Shown: positions 9,612 through 16,075 of the stretch, one piece after another | How positions within the stretch are numbered: position 1 is the first letter of the stretch | How the letters are laid out: each line of letters opens with the position of its first letter | Virus record (IMG/VR): IMGVR_UViG_3300049793_000366 | Coordinates: 310,001-374,000 of that record | Reading direction: 5' to 3' (one strand) | DNA length: 64,000 nt | Made by a program: the position numbers and the translations under genes | The notes under the pieces: model-generated | What the model saw: only the letters and a program-made list of their open reading frames with translations | Database searches by the model: none | Told to the model about the DNA's origin: nothing

Positions 9612-9683
9612 TGCGGGATAGAGCAGGGGTAGCTCGCTAGGCTCATAACCTAGAGGTCGGGTGTTCGAATCACCCTCCCGCTA
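9612..9683 (+). tRNA. tRNA-fMet (CAT), initiator-like
   Basis: Cloverleaf; 1:72 mismatch; CTAGG-CTCATAA-CCTAG. Confidence 0.85.
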
Positions 9684-9744
9684 CAAAGAATACAAAAATA
9701 TCAGTCTGGGAATCAGGACTTTAAAAGAAAAAGTAAAATTTTTC

Positions 9745-9775
9745 TTGACAATCTGAAACTTTCACCTTATATTTG
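9745..9775 (+). promoter_or_regulatory. Bacteroidota-type promoter driving the leader peptide/tRNA operon
   Basis: TTGACA at 9745 and TATATTTG at 9768-9775. Confidence 0.65.
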
Positions 9776-9888
9776 CGTAAAAATAAAGAAGTTGTTTACC
9801 TCACAAACATCAGATATAGTACGAGGTCTTGATTGAAAAAACAACTCTTAAGGAATTTAATAACAAAAACTGAATAAATAAAATAGTA

Positions 9889-10020
9889 ATGAAAACTCTA
9901 ACAGTAAATATGAATCTAAATAATACCATGACAACGGTGGTGAATATTACGTTATGTAATATTAGACCGGAATCTGGGTTAGTTCCTATTTGCCTAAAAG
10001 AGAAAGATATCATGCGATAA
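9889..10020 (+). CDS. Attenuator leader peptide, 43 aa (MKTLTVNMNLNNTMTTVVNITLCNIRPESGLVPICLKEKDIMR)
   Basis: Translated by hand; contains the antiterminator segment; composition matches the downstream tRNA set. Confidence 0.75.
   Translation: MKTLTVNMNLNNTMTTVVNITLCNIRPESGLVPICLKEKDIMR
9970..9982 (+). promoter_or_regulatory. Antiterminator segment GAATCTGGGTT(AG)
   Basis: Exact 11-nt copy of the terminator 3' arm, complementary to AACCCAGATTC at 10045-10055. Confidence 0.8.
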
Positions 10021-10043
10021 CTTATTCACAAGCAAAAAGCTCT

Positions 10044-10076
10044 AAACCCAGATTCATAAAGAATCTGGGTTTTTTT
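10044..10076 (+). terminator. Attenuator intrinsic terminator immediately before the tRNA array
   Basis: AAACCCAGATTC-ATAAA-GAATCTGGGTTT followed by TTTT. Confidence 0.9.
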
Positions 10077-10078
10077 AT

Positions 10079-10154
10079 GCCTATATAGTCCAACAAGAGC
10101 AGAGACAGTCGGCTTAAAATCGACACAGTAAGGGTTCGAACCCCTTTATAGGCA
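10079..10154 (+). tRNA. tRNA-Leu (TAA), atypical short variable loop
   Basis: GCCTATA/TATAGGC; GTCGG-CTTAAAA-TCGAC. Confidence 0.75.
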
Positions 10155-10164
10155 CAACATATAA

Positions 10165-10236
10165 GGATCAGTAGCTCAGTGGTAGAGCAAGTGACTGTTA
10201 ATCACTAGGTCGTAGGTTCAAGCCCTACCTGGTCCT
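10165..10236 (+). tRNA. tRNA-Asn (GTT), U73 discriminator
   Basis: AGTGA-CTGTTAA-TCACT; canonical D and T arms. Confidence 0.85.
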
Positions 10237-10244
10237 CAAAAAAT

Positions 10245-10323
10245 AGGTATGTACCGAGCCACACTGATAATGTGGATATTCGTAGCGGTGTTGTAAACGT
10301 GGGTTCAAATCCCACCTTACCTA
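10245..10323 (+). tRNA. D-armless tRNA-Ile (GAT)-like RNA with expanded variable region
   Basis: Acceptor AGGTATG/CTTACCT; only 7 nt before the anticodon arm CCACA-CTGATAA-TGTGG; intact T arm. Confidence 0.6.
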
Positions 10324-10331
10324 CAAAAAAT

Positions 10332-10404
10332 GCCTGAATAGCTCAGTTGGTAGAGCGTCTGATTTGTAATCAGAAGGTCGTCGGTTCGAACCCGGCTTTA
10401 GGCT
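10332..10404 (+). tRNA. tRNA-Thr (TGT)
   Basis: Canonical cloverleaf. Confidence 0.9.
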
Positions 10405-10414
10405 CAAGTTAAAT

Positions 10415-10494
10415 GCCCAGATGGTGGAATGGTAGACACGCTGGTCTAAGAAGCCAGTGCTTTTAGCGTGAGAGTTCAAGTCTCTCTTTGGGTA
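10415..10494 (+). tRNA. tRNA-Leu (AAG)
   Basis: Type II Leu body; CTGGT-CTAAGAA-GCCAG. Confidence 0.85.
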
Positions 10495-10507
10495 CGAAAT
10501 AAAATAT

Positions 10508-10581
10508 GCACTCGTGGTCTAACGGACAAGGGCGAGAGTTTTCTAAACTCTAAGGTGGGGGTTCGATTCCCTCCGAGTGTA
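10508..10581 (+). tRNA. tRNA-Arg (TCT)
   Basis: AGAGT-TTTCTAA-ACTCT. Confidence 0.85.
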
Positions 10582-10588
10582 CAAAAAT

Positions 10589-10677
10589 TGATGATTTGCC
10601 GTAGTTGGCCGAACGGTCCAGACTGTTAATCTGGTGAGCGTTATGCTCCGTCACAGGTTCGAATCCTGTATCATCAG
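10589..10677 (+). tRNA. tRNA-Asn (GTT) with long (type II) variable arm
   Basis: TGATGAT/ATCATCA plus G73; CCAGA-CTGTTAA-TCTGG; variable hairpin GAGC-GTTAT-GCTC. Confidence 0.8.
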
Positions 10678-10682
10678 CAAAT

Positions 10683-10756
10683 AGTCGGGTAGCTCAGTTG
10701 GTTAGAGCGCCACACTGATAATGTGGAGGTCGTGGGTTCAAGTCCCGCTCCGACTA
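10683..10756 (+). tRNA. tRNA-Ile (GAT)
   Basis: Canonical cloverleaf. Confidence 0.9.
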
Positions 10757-10762
10757 CTAAAT

Positions 10763-10845
10763 GACACCATGGCCGAGTGGAGCTGAAAAGCGATAGGCAT
10801 CAGTCTGCAAAACTGATTACGGGGGTTCAAATCCCTCTGGTGTCT
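10763..10845 (+). tRNA. tRNA-Cys (GCA) with hairpin insertion in the D-loop
   Basis: U73; TCAGT-CTGCAAA-ACTGA; GCT-GAAA-AGC insertion. Confidence 0.8.
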
Positions 10846-10926
10846 CAATGGGTTCGGTTTTAGTCCGAATATGATAAGATTACCTGAGGTAGAAATACTA
10901 ATCAAGGGGCACCGAAAGAATTGAAT

Positions 10927-11011
10927 GGTTGGGTGGCGAAATTGGCAGTACGCGGTAGACTTAAAATCTACTGGTTTTAACACCGTGAGGGTTCAAGTCC
11001 CTCCCCGACTA
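10927..11011 (+). tRNA. tRNA-Leu (TAA), canonical type II
   Basis: GTAGA-CTTAAAA-TCTAC with long variable arm. Confidence 0.9.
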
Positions 11012-11018
11012 CAAATGC

Positions 11019-11093
11019 GCCTTCGTAGTCCAAACGCGCAGAGACATACGCCTTAGAAGCGTAGTGTTGTGGGTTCGAATCCCACCGAAGGTA
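11019..11093 (+). tRNA. tRNA-Leu (TAG), atypical short variable loop
   Basis: TACGC-CTTAGAA-GCGTA. Confidence 0.75.
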
Positions 11094-11104
11094 CAAACAT
11101 AAAT

Positions 11105-11176
11105 GCCCTGATGGCGTAACGGCAAGCGTTATTCTTTTACATGGAATAGGTAGTGGTTCGATTCCACTTCGGGGTA
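11105..11176 (+). tRNA. tRNA-Val (TAC), divergent
   Basis: ATTCT-TTTACAT-GGAAT. Confidence 0.7.
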
Positions 11177-11182
11177 CAAAAT

Positions 11183-11257
11183 AGTTGCATAGCTCAGTTG
11201 GTTCAGAGCATCTGCCTTACAAGCAGAGGGTCGTTGGTTCGAATCCAACTGTGACTA
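11183..11257 (+). tRNA. tRNA-Val (TAC)
   Basis: Canonical cloverleaf. Confidence 0.9.
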
Positions 11258-11265
11258 CAAAAAAT

Positions 11266-11338
11266 GCCCGTATGACGTAATCGGCAGTCGTACTTGTCTC
11301 AAAAGCAAGGTGTCTTGGTTCGAATCCAAGTATGGGTA
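11266..11338 (+). tRNA. tRNA-Leu (CAA), atypical short variable loop
   Basis: CTTGT-CTCAAAA-GCAAG. Confidence 0.75.
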
Positions 11339-11341
11339 CTA

Positions 11342-11513
11342 AACCGAAAGAGATATGTAAGGAATGACATATTCTTTCACATCAATGAAGTAATGAAGAA
11401 TATTCGAATAGTTCGGATTTACTTTGAATGTGTGGGGTGATGAGAGTGGTTAAAGACCACAAGGGATGGAAACAGTCCTGATGTTTGACAAAGCTCATCG
11501 TACTCTTTTGGTT
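11342..11513 (+). ncRNA. Multibranched ncRNA of about 170 nt inside the tRNA array
   Basis: Closing helix AACCGAAAGAG/CTCTTTTGGTT; internal stems ATATGT/ACATAT, CACAT/ATGTG, GATGAG/CTCATC, GTGGT/ACCAC. Confidence 0.65.
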
Positions 11514-11517
11514 ATTT

Positions 11518-11591
11518 AGTCACATAGCTCAGTTGGTTAGAGCATTCCCTTGACATGGGAAAGGTCACAGGTTCGAATCCTGTTGCGACTA
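11518..11591 (+). tRNA. tRNA-Val (GAC)
   Basis: TTCCC-TTGACAT-GGGAA. Confidence 0.9.
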
Positions 11592-11617
11592 CAAACATAC
11601 ATGAAGTACAAGTGTAT

Positions 11618-11691
11618 GGCGCAGTAGCTTAACTGGATATAGAGCATCTCTGTTTTAGGAGAAAGGTTTGGGTTCAAATCCCTTCTGTGTA
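11618..11691 (+). pseudogene. Degenerate tRNA (6-nt anticodon loop GTTTTA)
   Basis: D arm and GGTTCAAATCC T-loop retained; imperfect stems. Confidence 0.5.
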
Positions 11692-11699
11692 AAATATTA

Positions 11700-11783
11700 G
11701 CCGATGTGGCTCAGTGGCGACAGCACTTGCCTTGTAAGCAAGTCGTGATAAACGCATCGGGGGTTCGAGTCCCTCCATCGGCT
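11700..11783 (+). tRNA. tRNA-Thr (TGT) with long variable arm
   Basis: CTTGC-CTTGTAA-GCAAG; variable hairpin CGT-GATAA-ACG. Confidence 0.8.
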
Positions 11784-11798
11784 CATAAGAAGTGTAGT

Positions 11799-11871
11799 GC
11801 TGATATAGTTCAGTTGGTAGAACGCATCCTTGGTAGGGATGAGGTGACAGGTTCGATTCCCGTTATCAGCT
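11799..11871 (+). tRNA. tRNA-Thr (GGT)
   Basis: CATCC-TTGGTAG-GGATG. Confidence 0.85.
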
Positions 11872-11883
11872 CAAAGTAAAAAT

Positions 11884-11965
11884 GCCGTTGTGAACAGATG
11901 TGGTAATTGTGTTCGGCTCATATCCGAATTGGAAACTATTGTAGGTTCGAGTCCTACCAGCGGTA
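11884..11965 (+). tRNA. tRNA-Met or Ile2 (CAT) with enlarged variable region
   Basis: TTCGG-CTCATAT-CCGAA; 12-nt variable region. Confidence 0.75.
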
Positions 11966-12004
11966 CTAACAAATAAAAATAAACAAATAAAAAACAAGAA
12001 GACA

Positions 12005-13200
12005 ATGGGAACGAAAATTTAGACCATAAGGAACTCGGAAAGCAATTAAATCTTTTTTGCTTTTCAGAAGATGTGGGTAAGGGTCTACCACTATGGTTAC
12101 CGAAAGGTGCTATAATAAGAGAGGAATTAATTTCTTATCTTAAAAAGATACAACTCAAAATGGGTTATCAAGGAGTAGTAAGTCCACATATAGCAAATGT
12201 TAAGCTATATAAAATATCAGGACACTACGACAAGTATAAGGATCACGCATTTGGAGAGATATGTTGTCCTGGTGAAGAAAGTTATATGCTTAAACCCATG
12301 AACTGCCCTCATCATTGTCAGATTTATAAAAGTGAACCTCGTTCTTATAGAGATTTACCTTTAAGATTTGCTGAGTTTGGACAAGTATATCGGTATGAAG
12401 ATAGTGGTGCTGTTAATGGTTTATTACGAGTGCGAGGATTTTGTCAAGATGATGCTCACTTATTTTGTAGACCTGACCAAGTGAAGGTTGAAATTAACAA
12501 CATAATTAAACTCGTTCTTTATGTACTGAATGAATTTGACTTTAAAGATTTTAAAGCTCAAATATCTCTAAGAGATAGTTCTGATGATAAGTATATTGGG
12601 TCAGATGAAGTTTGGGAACAAGCGGAGTCAGCACTAATAGAAGCGGCTAAAGATAATGGATTAAACTACAATATCGAAAAAGGTGAAGCCGCGTTTTATG
12701 GTCCTAAGATAGACTTCATGGTTAAGGATTGTTTGAATAGAGAATGGCAATTAGGGTCAATACAATTAGACTATAACTTACCAGATAAGTTTGAGTTAGA
12801 ATATATTGATTCGGAAGGGAAGCCGAGTAGACCAGTTATGATTCATAGAGCGCCATTTGGTTCTTTAGAAAGATTTATAGCAATTTTACTCGAACACTAT
12901 CAAGGTAGATTACCATTTTGGTTATCACCAGAACAAGTGATGATTTTACCAATATCAGAAAAGTTTAATGATTTTTCAGATAGTATAAAGTCAAGATTAT
13001 TTGATAGCGATATCAGAGCAGTTGTAGATAGTAGGAATGAAAGATTGCCTAAAAAAATAAAAGATGCTCAATTAAATTATATCCCGTATATGATTGTGAT
13101 TGGTCAGAAAGAAGTAGATAGTGGAATTTTATCAATTCGTTCAAGAGAAGGAAAAGAAGAAAAGATTGATATTGATAGTTTCATTAAAAGTGTAAAATAA
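12005..13200 (+). CDS. thrS: Threonyl-tRNA synthetase lacking the N-terminal editing domain; start apparently needs a -1 frameshift
   Basis: KPMNCPHH, YRYEDSG, RVRGFCQDDAH, AFYGPKID, MIHRAPFGSLERF; conserved DHKELGK begins at 12022, upstream of the first in-frame start (GTG 12073); ATG 12005 is out of frame. Confidence 0.9.
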
Positions 13201-13223
13201 TAATTCCACCGAAAGGTGGATAT

Positions 13224-13296
13224 GCTCTCGTAGTTTAATGGAAAGAATCACACTTTCCTAAAGTGGCGGGTAGGGGTTCGAATCCCTTCGAGAGTA
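13224..13296 (+). tRNA. tRNA-Arg (CCT)
   Basis: GCTCTCG/CGAGAGT; CACT-TTCCTAA-AGTG. Confidence 0.8.
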
Positions 13297-13300
13297 CAAC

Positions 13301-13456: not shown

Positions 13457-14635
13457 ATGAAAGGTTGGATAAAATCAATCAGAGAGTCCAAAGGACTACA
13501 ATTTCTCGCAGTGACGGATGGGCAACATGACCACCAGCTTACAATTAAAACAGGTGAAGCATTCATTGAGGGAAATCCGAAAGTGGGTGCTTCTTTTTTT
13601 GCAGAAGGTTTTGATTCTGTAACGCCAAGAGGTCTACCGGAGTTCGTAGTGACTAAGCTGACAATAGTTGGTGAATCAGATGATACATTTCCGATTCAAC
13701 CTAAGCATCATACGCCTGAGTTCTTAAGAAGTATTCCTGAGTTAAGGGGTAAAGCAAAAGGATTTCAAGCAACATGGAAAATCAGACATCACCTAACACA
13801 AGCGATTCATCGTTTCTTAGAAGATGAAGGTTTCTATCAGTACTACACACCGATAGTTACACACGCTGATTGTGAAGGAGCTGGTGAGACATTTGATGTA
13901 AAGAGTGATTGGATGTCAGAGAAACTAACGGTGTCTGGACAGTTACATGGTGAAGTTGGTATGATGTCTTTAGGAAAGATTTATACATTCTCACCTTGTT
14001 TCAGAGCAGAGAAGTCTTTAACTAAAAAGCACTTATCTGAATTCTGGATGATTGAACCAGAAATTGCGTTCTGTGAATTAGATGAGACAGTTGAATTTGC
14101 CGAGAAATTTGTAAAGTCAATAATTAAATATGTACTCACTAAATCAGAGTATGAATTTAAGCAACTCGGAATCGACCATCAACACCTCGAACCTCTCCTG
14201 GATAAGGATTGGAAGAAAGTAAAATATGATGAAGTATGTGAAACATTTAAGCTCACTTGGGGTCACGATATTTCATCTGAAACGGAAAAAAAGATAGTCG
14301 AGAAATGGGGACCAACATTCGTTACTGAATACCCAGAAGGATTGAAACCCTTCTATATGAAGAAAGATGGTAGAGTAGCAAAATGTTTTGATTTAATTTT
14401 CCCAGAAGTGGGTGAGTTAATCGGAGGGTCACAACGAGAAGAAGACTATGATAAAATAGTTGAGCAAATGACTCAAGCACACTTGGATCTGGATAAGATG
14501 CACTGGTATTTAGCAACACGAAAATGGGGAACAGTTCCACATTCAGGGTTCGGATTAGGTTTTGAACGTTTATTAATGTTCATCACCAAAGCAACTAAAA
14601 TTCACGATGTTATTCCTTTTCCGGTGAGCTATTAA
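13457..14635 (+). CDS. asnS: Asparaginyl-tRNA synthetase
   Basis: OB-fold KGWI, CEGAGETF, LTVSGQL, FRAEKS..KHLSEFWMIEPE, GELIGGSQRE, PHSGFGLGFER. Confidence 0.92.
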   Translation: MKGWIKSIRESKGLQFLAVTDGQHDHQLTIKTGEAFIEGNPKVGASFFAEGFDSVTPRGLPEFVVTKLTIVGESDDTFPIQPKHHTPEFLRSIPELRGKAKGFQATWKIRHHLTQAIHRFLEDEGFYQYYTPIVTHADCEGAGETFDVKSDWMSEKLTVSGQLHGEVGMMSLGKIYTFSPCFRAEKSLTKKHLSEFWMIEPEIAFCELDETVEFAEKFVKSIIKYVLTKSEYEFKQLGIDHQHLEPLLDKDWKKVKYDEVCETFKLTWGHDISSETEKKIVEKWGPTFVTEYPEGLKPFYMKKDGRVAKCFDLIFPEVGELIGGSQREEDYDKIVEQMTQAHLDLDKMHWYLATRKWGTVPHSGFGLGFERLLMFITKATKIHDVIPFPVSY

Positions 14636-14652: not shown

Positions 14653-14919
14653 ATGAATAATATTAATATAACAGAAATAGTAAAGAACGGAAAAACAGAA
14701 TTAACACACGCAGTAGCAGGAGTACTCTATTATAGAACTGATACCAATACACACAGTTATATCTATGTGATTGATATGAATGATAGAGAAGATGTAGGTA
14801 CTGCTACATTCGAAGCAAGGCCAAAAACCTTATATTTGATGCGTTGGATTCGAAAGTCCATAGAGAATAATACAATAATCGTAATTAAAAAGAAATACAA
14901 TGAAACTGAATCTAAATAA
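14653..14919 (+). CDS. Hypothetical phage protein
   Basis: 88-aa ORF in the aaRS operon. Confidence 0.6.
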   Translation: MNNINITEIVKNGKTELTHAVAGVLYYRTDTNTHSYIYVIDMNDREDVGTATFEARPKTLYLMRWIRKSIENNTIIVIKKKYNETESK

Positions 14920-16075
14920 AATAAAAACAACTCCGAAAGGAATGCCCTTTGGCTTCTGTGTGTATGGGAAACCTACACCAGAAGTCCAAGCATGGGCTTC
15001 GCATTGGAATATCAAAGAGCAAGAGTCGGGTCCATATACGAATTTCATCTTACCTGATGGCTTAAGTATCGAAGAGATTTTTGAAGAAGCAAAAACATAT
15101 GAGTGGGTCGATGGTTTTAGTCCAAATTTAAATAAACATTTGCACTTAGGTCACTTATCTAATCTGATTATAGCCAAAGCAATGCAGTCAATGAGTGTAG
15201 GTAAAAACTACATAGCGATATTGGGTGATACGCTGTCTGGTCAGGTTGATAAAACAGATGCCTTGAAGAAGTATAATGAATATTGTCAGAACTTCGGGTA
15301 TAATATCAATCAACTCATTTTCGCCTCAGAACAAAAATTATCAAATGATATTTTAGTTGATGGTGATGGTGAATATACGGGAACGAAAATATTCAATATC
15401 AATGAAGACAAAGTTGTAGGAATTAAAAGCGATGGTTCAACATCCTATTTCTATCAAGATGTCTCACTTGCTCAAAAGTTAAACGCACCAACGTTGTATT
15501 TAACTGGATTTGAACAAGTGGGGCATTTTTCGTTATTGAAACAATTATTCCCGCATATAGAACACATTGGTCTTGGATTGGTAACAGTAGATGGTAAAAA
15601 GATGTCTTCATCTGAGGGTAATGTAATCTTCGCAGAGGATATTTTCAATCAACTACTTGATAAATTTAGTGGTGATGAAAAATTAGTTTGGAATGTAATA
15701 GCTGGGCAAATTTTAAAATCTACACCAAATTCTGTTAAGAATATCGATATGAAGCAAATTGAAAATGTAAAACAATCTGCTGGGTTGTATATCTCTTATA
15801 CGATGGCACGTATGTGGTCAGCGGGTATTGAATACATTGAAACTGATACTATCGAGGATCCTGCTCTTCTTTTTAAATCAATGAAAGCGAAGTTTAACTT
15901 ACAACCGAATATTCTATTCGAAGAGGTAATTGAACATTGTAAGAAAATTAATAACTTATATATAACACACAAAATAAAAGACAACGATGCTAATACAAAA
16001 TTATTTCAATCACTCACCAACGATTTGGTGACAACGACTAAAAAATTAGGATTATTTAAAATAAATAAATTATGA
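14900..16075 (+). CDS. argS: Reduced arginyl-tRNA synthetase (class I)
   Basis: FSPNLNKHLHLGHL (HIGH), KSDGSTSYFYQD, KMSS, GLYISYTMAR; only 391 aa. Confidence 0.8.
   Translation: MKLNLNKIKTTPKGMPFGFCVYGKPTPEVQAWASHWNIKEQESGPYTNFILPDGLSIEEIFEEAKTYEWVDGFSPNLNKHLHLGHLSNLIIAKAMQSMSVGKNYIAILGDTLSGQVDKTDALKKYNEYCQNFGYNINQLIFASEQKLSNDILVDGDGEYTGTKIFNINEDKVVGIKSDGSTSYFYQDVSLAQKLNAPTLYLTGFEQVGHFSLLKQLFPHIEHIGLGLVTVDGKKMSSSEGNVIFAEDIFNQLLDKFSGDEKLVWNVIAGQILKSTPNSVKNIDMKQIENVKQSAGLYISYTMARMWSAGIEYIETDTIEDPALLFKSMKAKFNLQPNILFEEVIEHCKKINNLYITHKIKDNDANTKLFQSLTNDLVTTTKKLGLFKINKL

Follow-up and report, generated by a model that had tools for sequence, protein, structure and literature searches.

Does the 79-nt element at positions 10245-10323 (+) of the analysed sequence encode a tRNA that has lost its D arm, and if so, can it still be a working tRNA? 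The window, i.e. the whole 64,000-nt stretch that was analysed, corresponds to positions 310001-374000 of a 507,910-bp IMG/VR virus record (IMGVR_UViG_3300049793_000366, hereafter G000) with 33% G+C, which among DNA data sets is best represented in a soil metagenome. A sequence-only reading had described the element as a D-armless paralog of tRNA-Ile with an identical anticodon arm, in which the complementarity of TACCG to CGGTG of a 23-nt variable region suggests a substitute helix, and had inferred either a re-wired functional tRNA or a decoy for anticodon nucleases. We found the description accurate in every element. The acceptor strands AGGTATG and CTTACCT form 6 of 7 pairs with one U.U at 6:67, TACCGAG stands in place of the D arm, and the anticodon arm CCACA-CTGATAA-TGTGG is followed by 23 nt, the T arm GTGGG-TTCAAAT-CCCAC and the discriminator A. 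CGGTG (10286-10290) is complementary to TACCG (10252-10256), giving 5 pairs including one G.U. The identity with the canonical tRNA-Ile(GAT) at 10683-10757 (+) extends over 19 nt, the 17-nt anticodon arm plus one base on each side.

To determine whether the element is recognised as a tRNA, we compared it with standard tRNA models. The Rfam tRNA model (RF00005) scored it at 39.6 bits against a gathering score of 29 (E 7e-5 for the window), with 15 D-arm positions replaced by 4 nt and a 20-nt insertion placed in the variable region, whereas ARAGORN did not call it. The canonical paralog at 10683-10757 was found by both ARAGORN and Rfam (71.4 bits). The 7-bp acceptor stem, the 5-bp anticodon stem with a 7-nt loop carrying U33 and R37, and the 5-bp T stem with a 7-nt loop are all present, while a D hairpin between positions 9 and 26 is absent, because only 4 nt lie between U8 A9 and G26.

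A conserved family in viral records

To see whether the element is unique to this genome, we searched for homologs. The nearest public relatives are two 634-642 kb huge phages, LR745206.1 and LR756502.1, for which Bacteroidetes hosts were predicted by their authors (PMC7162821), and both carry the element just 3' of tRNA-Asn, with an identical core and compensatory changes in the acceptor stem. Pattern scans of IMG/VR brought in further copies, and a covariance model, R1, was built from 26 members. The R1 model separated the family (35 bits or more) from canonical tRNAs (31 bits or less), and the canonical tRNA-Ile of the window obtained only 24.5 bits. Members occur in 44 viral records, comprising 41 IMG/VR contigs of 4-385 kb, G000 and the two GenBank huge phages, and there are 62-63 distinct sequences. 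Among 62 unique members, the anticodons are GAT in 25, TAT in 14, CAT in 8, TCG in 7, TCT in 7 and ACG in 1. A second member of G000, an Arg-TCG gene, lies outside the window at 412731-412807 (locus L103:1501-1577), between tRNA-Arg(ACG) and tRNA-Ser(GGA).

The existence of conserved homologs had been set beforehand as a condition for the re-wired reading, and it is clearly fulfilled. In contrast, no member was found among 80 pattern hits in bacterial and archaeal genomes, nor in 151 sampled Bacteroidota genomes, of which only part of the candidates per genome were scored. Likewise, there was none in the tRNA array of Cellulophaga phage phi4:1, and blastn with two members returned none in cultured phages. 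The family is thus so far found only in viral records. Considering this conservation, a decaying pseudogene of tRNA-Ile that lost its D arm and gained junk in the variable region is very unlikely. Although ARAGORN misses the element, one acceptor pair is mismatched and a canonical paralog lies 360 nt away, the architecture recurs in 44 viral records with compensatory changes in every stem and invariant core bases, and the homologs are not assembly artefacts of a single sequence. One Ile-GAT subtype (L005 4148-4227, identical in loci L016, L019 and L028) shows what decay looks like, since its acceptor strands pair at only 4 of 7 positions although the rest is intact (R1 63.9 bits); it is possibly a decaying copy, or uses a different end.

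Helices and D-loop elements outside their usual order

To determine which helices are conserved, we aligned 49 members with Infernal, because a MAFFT alignment of all types mis-registered members with an 8-nt 5' segment. The acceptor stem (10245-10251 with 10316-10322), the anticodon stem and the T stem showed changes on both sides at 7/7, 5/5 and 4/5 pairs, respectively. Overall 94.9% of cells were paired (95.5% in the acceptor stem), against 32-44% when the partners were slid. The proposed TACCG/CGGTG helix was then examined on the same 49 members, and none of its pairs showed a change on both sides, only 72-82% of cells were paired, and one pair was unpaired in 22 of 49. The fifth pair faces C, T, A or G, and in Arg members the base after GG is A, opposite A9. 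While this helix is the minimum-free-energy fold of the single sequence and the CC and GG involved are conserved in most members, it competes for the same bases as the covarying helix described below, and the GG is explained better as G18G19 of a D loop. The fold therefore seems unlikely for the family, and we retain it only as a possible alternative conformer of the Ile-GAT subtype.

What covaries instead is a 3-bp helix directly next to the anticodon stem, in which CGA (10255-10257) pairs with TCG (10280-10282), as the 3' and 5' strands of a D stem would. All 3 pairs showed changes on both sides, and natural variants are CCC:GGG, CGC:GCG, CTC:GAG, CGT:ACG, CAG:CTG, ACC:GGT and CCG:CGG. Since the Infernal alignment was fitted to a model that contained this helix, we repeated the test with anchors that do not depend on pairing. 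In this test, 3 of 3 pairs formed in 55 of 62 sequences and 2 of 3 in the rest, with 14 distinct strand combinations, 9 of them fully Watson-Crick. None of 10,000 partner shuffles reached the observed value, and shifted registers gave 0.27-1.52 pairs on average against 2.89 observed. For the window sequence alone, however, nearest-neighbour thermodynamics did not prefer this helix and was neutral to unfavourable for it; the TACCG/CGGTG helix was about 3.6 kcal/mol better than the three classical stems alone, and both helices had a pairing probability near 0.4, so that the structural case is a comparative one. An extended model with TA:TA flanking CGA:TCG was contradicted by locus L022 and was dropped.

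Based on this helix, each part of the element could be related to standard tRNA numbering. T-A at 10252-10253, equivalent to U8 A9, was invariant in 34 aligned members and in all 49, and C at 10254 followed by CGA corresponds to position 22 and positions 23-25. G at 10258, equivalent to G26, faces A at 10276, a combination that occurs in 37 of 62 members and in the canonical tRNA-Ile at 10683. The anticodon arm occupies 10259-10275, with GAT at 10266-10268 and with U33 and A37 present. A-T-A-T at 10276-10279 is equivalent to positions 44-47 and forms a bulge between the anticodon stem and the D-stem strand, which is 4 nt long in 46 members, 3 nt in 12 and 5 nt in 4, of 62. TCG and the invariant T at 10280-10283 correspond to positions 10-12 and 13.

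The following A-G-C-G-G-T (10284-10289) is equivalent to A14 G15 C16 G18 G19 U20 of a D loop, and the word T-A-R-N(0-3)-GG is present in 62 of 63 unique members, the exception being a GAT member (L022) without a recognisable D-loop word. Three observations tie this stretch to real D loops. First, the base after GG is A in 10 of 10 Arg-anticodon members and T in about 35 of 37 Ile/CAT members, after three pattern mis-hits were corrected by eye. A20 is the classical D-loop identity element for ArgRS, and the Arg members read AACGGA, like the D loop of the canonical tRNA-Arg at window position 10508. Second, one CAT type carries AGTTGGTTA, which is identical to the D loop of the canonical tRNA-Ile at 10683. 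Third, the base equivalent to R15 (G at 10285) covaries with the last base before the T stem (C at 10298), equivalent to Y48, as the Levitt pair of the tRNA core. The combination is A/T in 43, G/C in 17 and G/G in 2 of 62 unique members, and two CAT sequences break the rule. In the alignment, where this pair was not part of the model's structure, it reads AU 34, GC 12, GU 1 and other 2. Both states occur within the GAT, second-GAT, short-TAT and long-TAT subtypes. On a tree built without these two columns, 4 of 5 well-supported independent contrasts switched together and none switched oppositely, although the sign test is underpowered (p = 0.125).

The linker at 10290-10297, GTTGTAAA, behaves as the true variable region. 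It is 5-8 nt long in the family, and the 89-90-nt TAT members carry an inserted 4-bp hairpin there. A possible pairing of T-A-C (10252-10254) back to the distal linker showed covariation at one pair (CG 29, UA 8, GC 2), but the alignment was fitted to a model that contained this outer helix, it is energetically unfavourable, the CAT types lack it, and the inserted hairpin of the long TAT types competes with it. In the T arm (10299-10315, loop TTCAAAT), T55 and C56 are kept in all members seen. Some phages have non-standard T loops (CTCAGAA, ATCGTAA, ATCATAG) in both canonical and permuted genes, as at L002 3154-3226 and 3233-3311 and in the GAT members of L008 and L011, where positions 54 and 58 change together (T/A to C/G or A/T). 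The discriminator A73 at 10323 is A in every Ile/CAT member, and no CCA is encoded, as in the neighbouring canonical genes.

Inferred fold and function of the permuted tRNA

Taken all together, the element is best described as a phage tRNA-Ile gene whose D arm is permuted and not absent, so that the term D-armless is misleading, and the interpretation offered by the sequence-only reading was partly supported: the evidence favours a re-wired functional tRNA, but not with the helix that was proposed. The chain runs 1-7, 8-9, 22-25, 26, 27-43, 44-47, 10-13, 14-20, linker, 48, 49-65, 66-72 and 73, such that segment 10-21 has moved from in front of the anticodon arm to between 47 and 48. In a normal tRNA the D stem stacks on the anticodon stem, so that 39-44 and 10-13 form one quasi-continuous strand and 22-31 the other, positions 8/9 lie next to the 13-22 end, and 21 and 48 lie next to each other. 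The new connectivity would therefore need no change of shape. The D stem (CGA:UCG) would become a covalent extension of the anticodon stem, and the D-loop-like strand could still make the core contacts U8-A14, G15-C48 and G18G19 with the T loop, although this is geometric reasoning from the canonical structure and not a computed model. Tandem duplication of the D/anticodon domain followed by loss of its two ends would produce this order. The anticodons of the family are connected by single base changes (GAT-TAT-CAT, TAT-TCT and TCT-TCG-ACG), and the switch of N20 from T to A accompanies the step from Ile to Arg.

In this view, the RNA would be cut out of the polycistronic array transcript, receive CCA, be charged with isoleucine through GAU and A73 by IleRS of the host, or by the phage's own in this genome, and read AUC/AUU. 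We consider a chargeable, decoding tRNA-Ile the most likely reading, with a probability of roughly 0.68. The existence of the family, its helices, the 15:48 covariation and the identity-linked position 20 are established by the comparative analysis, whereas the three-dimensional fold with its tertiary contacts, expression, processing, charging and decoding on the ribosome are inferred from sequence, as no RNA run contains the locus. The features kept are those of a tRNA that is charged and decodes: A73, N20, the core pairs, U33/R37 and the T loop, and the window copy has the anticodon GAU with A37/A38 and A73 expected of tRNA-Ile. ARAGORN found 61 tRNA genes in G000, covering all 20 amino acids, plus one with a CTA anticodon, but no canonical TCG gene, and in the 360-kb, complete or near-complete genome G002 there is no canonical TAT or TCG gene, so that permuted genes are the only ones found with these anticodons. 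Contig L017 carries six permuted genes, five of them without a canonical counterpart in the locus. For the window copy, however, canonical tRNA-Ile(GAT) is also present in the genome, so the gene is not needed to fill a gap here.

A decoy or sponge, which would present the anticodon arm of the real tRNA-Ile to a host anticodon nuclease or other tRNA-sensing defence without serving in translation, is not excluded but seems unlikely. The anticodon arm is 17/17 identical to that of the canonical paralog, a canonical gene with the same anticodon lies in the same locus for 16 of 47 permuted genes (often for GAT and CAT members), and phage tRNAs are known to counter tRNA-targeting defences (PMC10264068, PMC11464382, PMC11555353). 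However, a decoy needs neither A73, nor the identity-linked position 20, nor a 15:48 pair, G18G19 and a canonical T loop, all of which are conserved. Furthermore, the 17/17 identity is special to the window, as the two copies share 8-15 of 17 positions elsewhere, and the gap-filling genes of G000 (TCG) and G002 (TAT, TCG) also speak against this reading.

A tRNA-like RNA with another role, for example a ligand that regulates or is dedicated to a phage synthetase, a primer or a recombination site, is likewise improbable. The gene lies in an island of synthetase genes, and in the sequence designated W02 an IleRS gene lies 3.6 kb upstream. However, IleRS is present in only 2 of the 6 large genomes that carry the permuted tRNA-Ile, which rejects an obligatory link to a phage IleRS and means that host IleRS must usually do the charging, if charging occurs. 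In addition, the full set of decoding features (U33, R37, and anticodons restricted to sense codons of Ile/Met/Arg) is kept.

Known tRNA variants and the surrounding gene array

To place the element among described tRNAs, we searched the full text of open-access papers and bioRxiv and found no description of this topology. Compared with canonical bacterial and phage tRNA-Ile(GAU), the acceptor stem, A73, anticodon arm, T arm, U8 A9, G26/A44, A14, R15:Y48 and G18G19 are all present, but the 5' strand of the D stem and the D loop lie 3' of the anticodon arm. Mitochondrial D-armless tRNAs, such as metazoan mt tRNA-Ser(AGY) and the armless tRNAs of nematodes and mites (review PMC4394434), also have only a short connector between the acceptor and anticodon stems. 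However, they have lost the D loop and its G18G19/T-loop contacts and are shortened, whereas here the D-loop elements, the 15:48 pair and a canonical T loop are retained in a new position, the RNA is longer than normal (79 nt), and the carrier is not an organelle genome but a phage of bacteria. In the circularly permuted tRNA genes of the red alga Cyanidioschyzon merolae (the topic of PMC4090602), segments also occur in non-standard order, but there the 3' half precedes the 5' half and processing through a circular intermediate restores a canonical mature tRNA. Here the gene starts and ends with the two acceptor strands and the permutation is internal, so it must persist in the mature RNA. The allo-tRNAs and (8/4)/(9/3) tRNAs of bacteria and phages (Mukai et al., PMC5389517) are likewise non-standard cloverleaves found by mining genomes and metagenomes, some in phage tRNA clusters, with anticodons that include UAU. 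Those alter the lengths of the acceptor and T stems and keep a normal D hairpin and a long variable arm, while this family keeps the 7/5 configuration in all members and re-orders the D arm. Phage tRNAs that escape or neutralise tRNA-targeting defences (PMC10264068, PMC11464382, PMC11555353) also duplicate available anticodons, but the known cases differ from host tRNAs by point changes in the anticodon loop or stem and not by topology.

All known cytoplasmic and bacterial tRNAs share one strand connectivity, and the only natural exceptions known are reduced mitochondrial tRNAs, which lose arms rather than re-order them. A conserved family that keeps every core element of the L shape but threads the chain differently would be a natural circular permutation of the D/anticodon domain, and would test whether synthetases, RNase P, EF-Tu, modification enzymes and the ribosome read connectivity or shape. 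It would also be a ready-made scaffold for orthogonal tRNA engineering. In practice, ARAGORN misses these genes or calls them with wrong borders, so that tRNA inventories of huge phages are undercounted.

The permuted genes look like the Ile/Arg/CAT part of a second, structurally distinct tRNA set. Both G000 and G002 carry, for about ten other amino acids, short/long pairs of tRNA genes with the same anticodon, as seen at window 10589-10678, 11700-11784 and 11884-11966, elsewhere in G000 and in G002 (loci L232-L250). The canonical gene is about 72-76 nt and the paralog 82-90 nt; most of the long forms have an extra 3-5-bp hairpin in the variable region, and most have a 3-bp D stem with an 11-nt loop, i.e. 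a class II-like body. The pairs cover Thr, Gly, Lys, Gln, Asp, Val, Cys, Met, Asn, Trp and His and represent a systematic second tRNA set in two megaphage genomes. Evasion of tRNA-directed nucleases is a reasonable guess for why such a set is kept, in view of the published counter-defence, and would add a new kind of counter-defence, although no link to a defence system is shown here. A more far-reaching possibility, which remains unlikely on present evidence, is that huge phages maintain a parallel, topologically re-wired set of fully functional tRNAs, with a permuted D arm for Ile, Met/Ile2 and Arg and class II-like bodies for many other amino acids. This set would be charged by normal synthetases but not recognised or cleaved by tRNA-targeting host immunity, or by a phage nuclease that removes host tRNAs. 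If so, the tRNA L-shape can be built with a different strand connectivity and still work on the ribosome.

The element lies in a dense tRNA array at 9612-13297, which is directly followed by a translation island of synthetase genes. This island holds a ThrRS core at 12073-13197, which aligns only to positions 189-562 of the 565-position thrS profile and lacks the N-terminal part, an AsnRS at 13457-14632, and a 391-aa protein at 14900-16072 with a weak, sub-threshold ArgRS match. Elsewhere, G000 encodes an IleRS of 742 aa at about 51.8-54.0 kb (locus L225; TIGR00392, 695.6 bits against an equivalog cutoff of 621.4), a ValRS-like protein of 509 aa at 396.7-398.2 kb (L226) and a LeuRS-like protein of 421 aa at 128.1-129.4 kb (L227). 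The latter two are shortened and match only the flanks of their profiles, so they appear to lack the editing domain. The tRNA gene with the CTA anticodon, an amber suppressor type labelled Pyl by ARAGORN, lies outside the window at 121630-121702 of G000. Within the array, a tRNA-Cys(GCA)-like gene at 10763-10845 has normal acceptor, anticodon and T arms but a D loop of about 21 nt; ARAGORN misses it and Rfam gives only a partial hit (10781-10837, 32.7 bits). Finally, a tRNA-like gene at 11617-11693 has an irregular anticodon loop, for which ARAGORN reports a two-base anticodon and Rfam a score of 29.4 bits, just at threshold.
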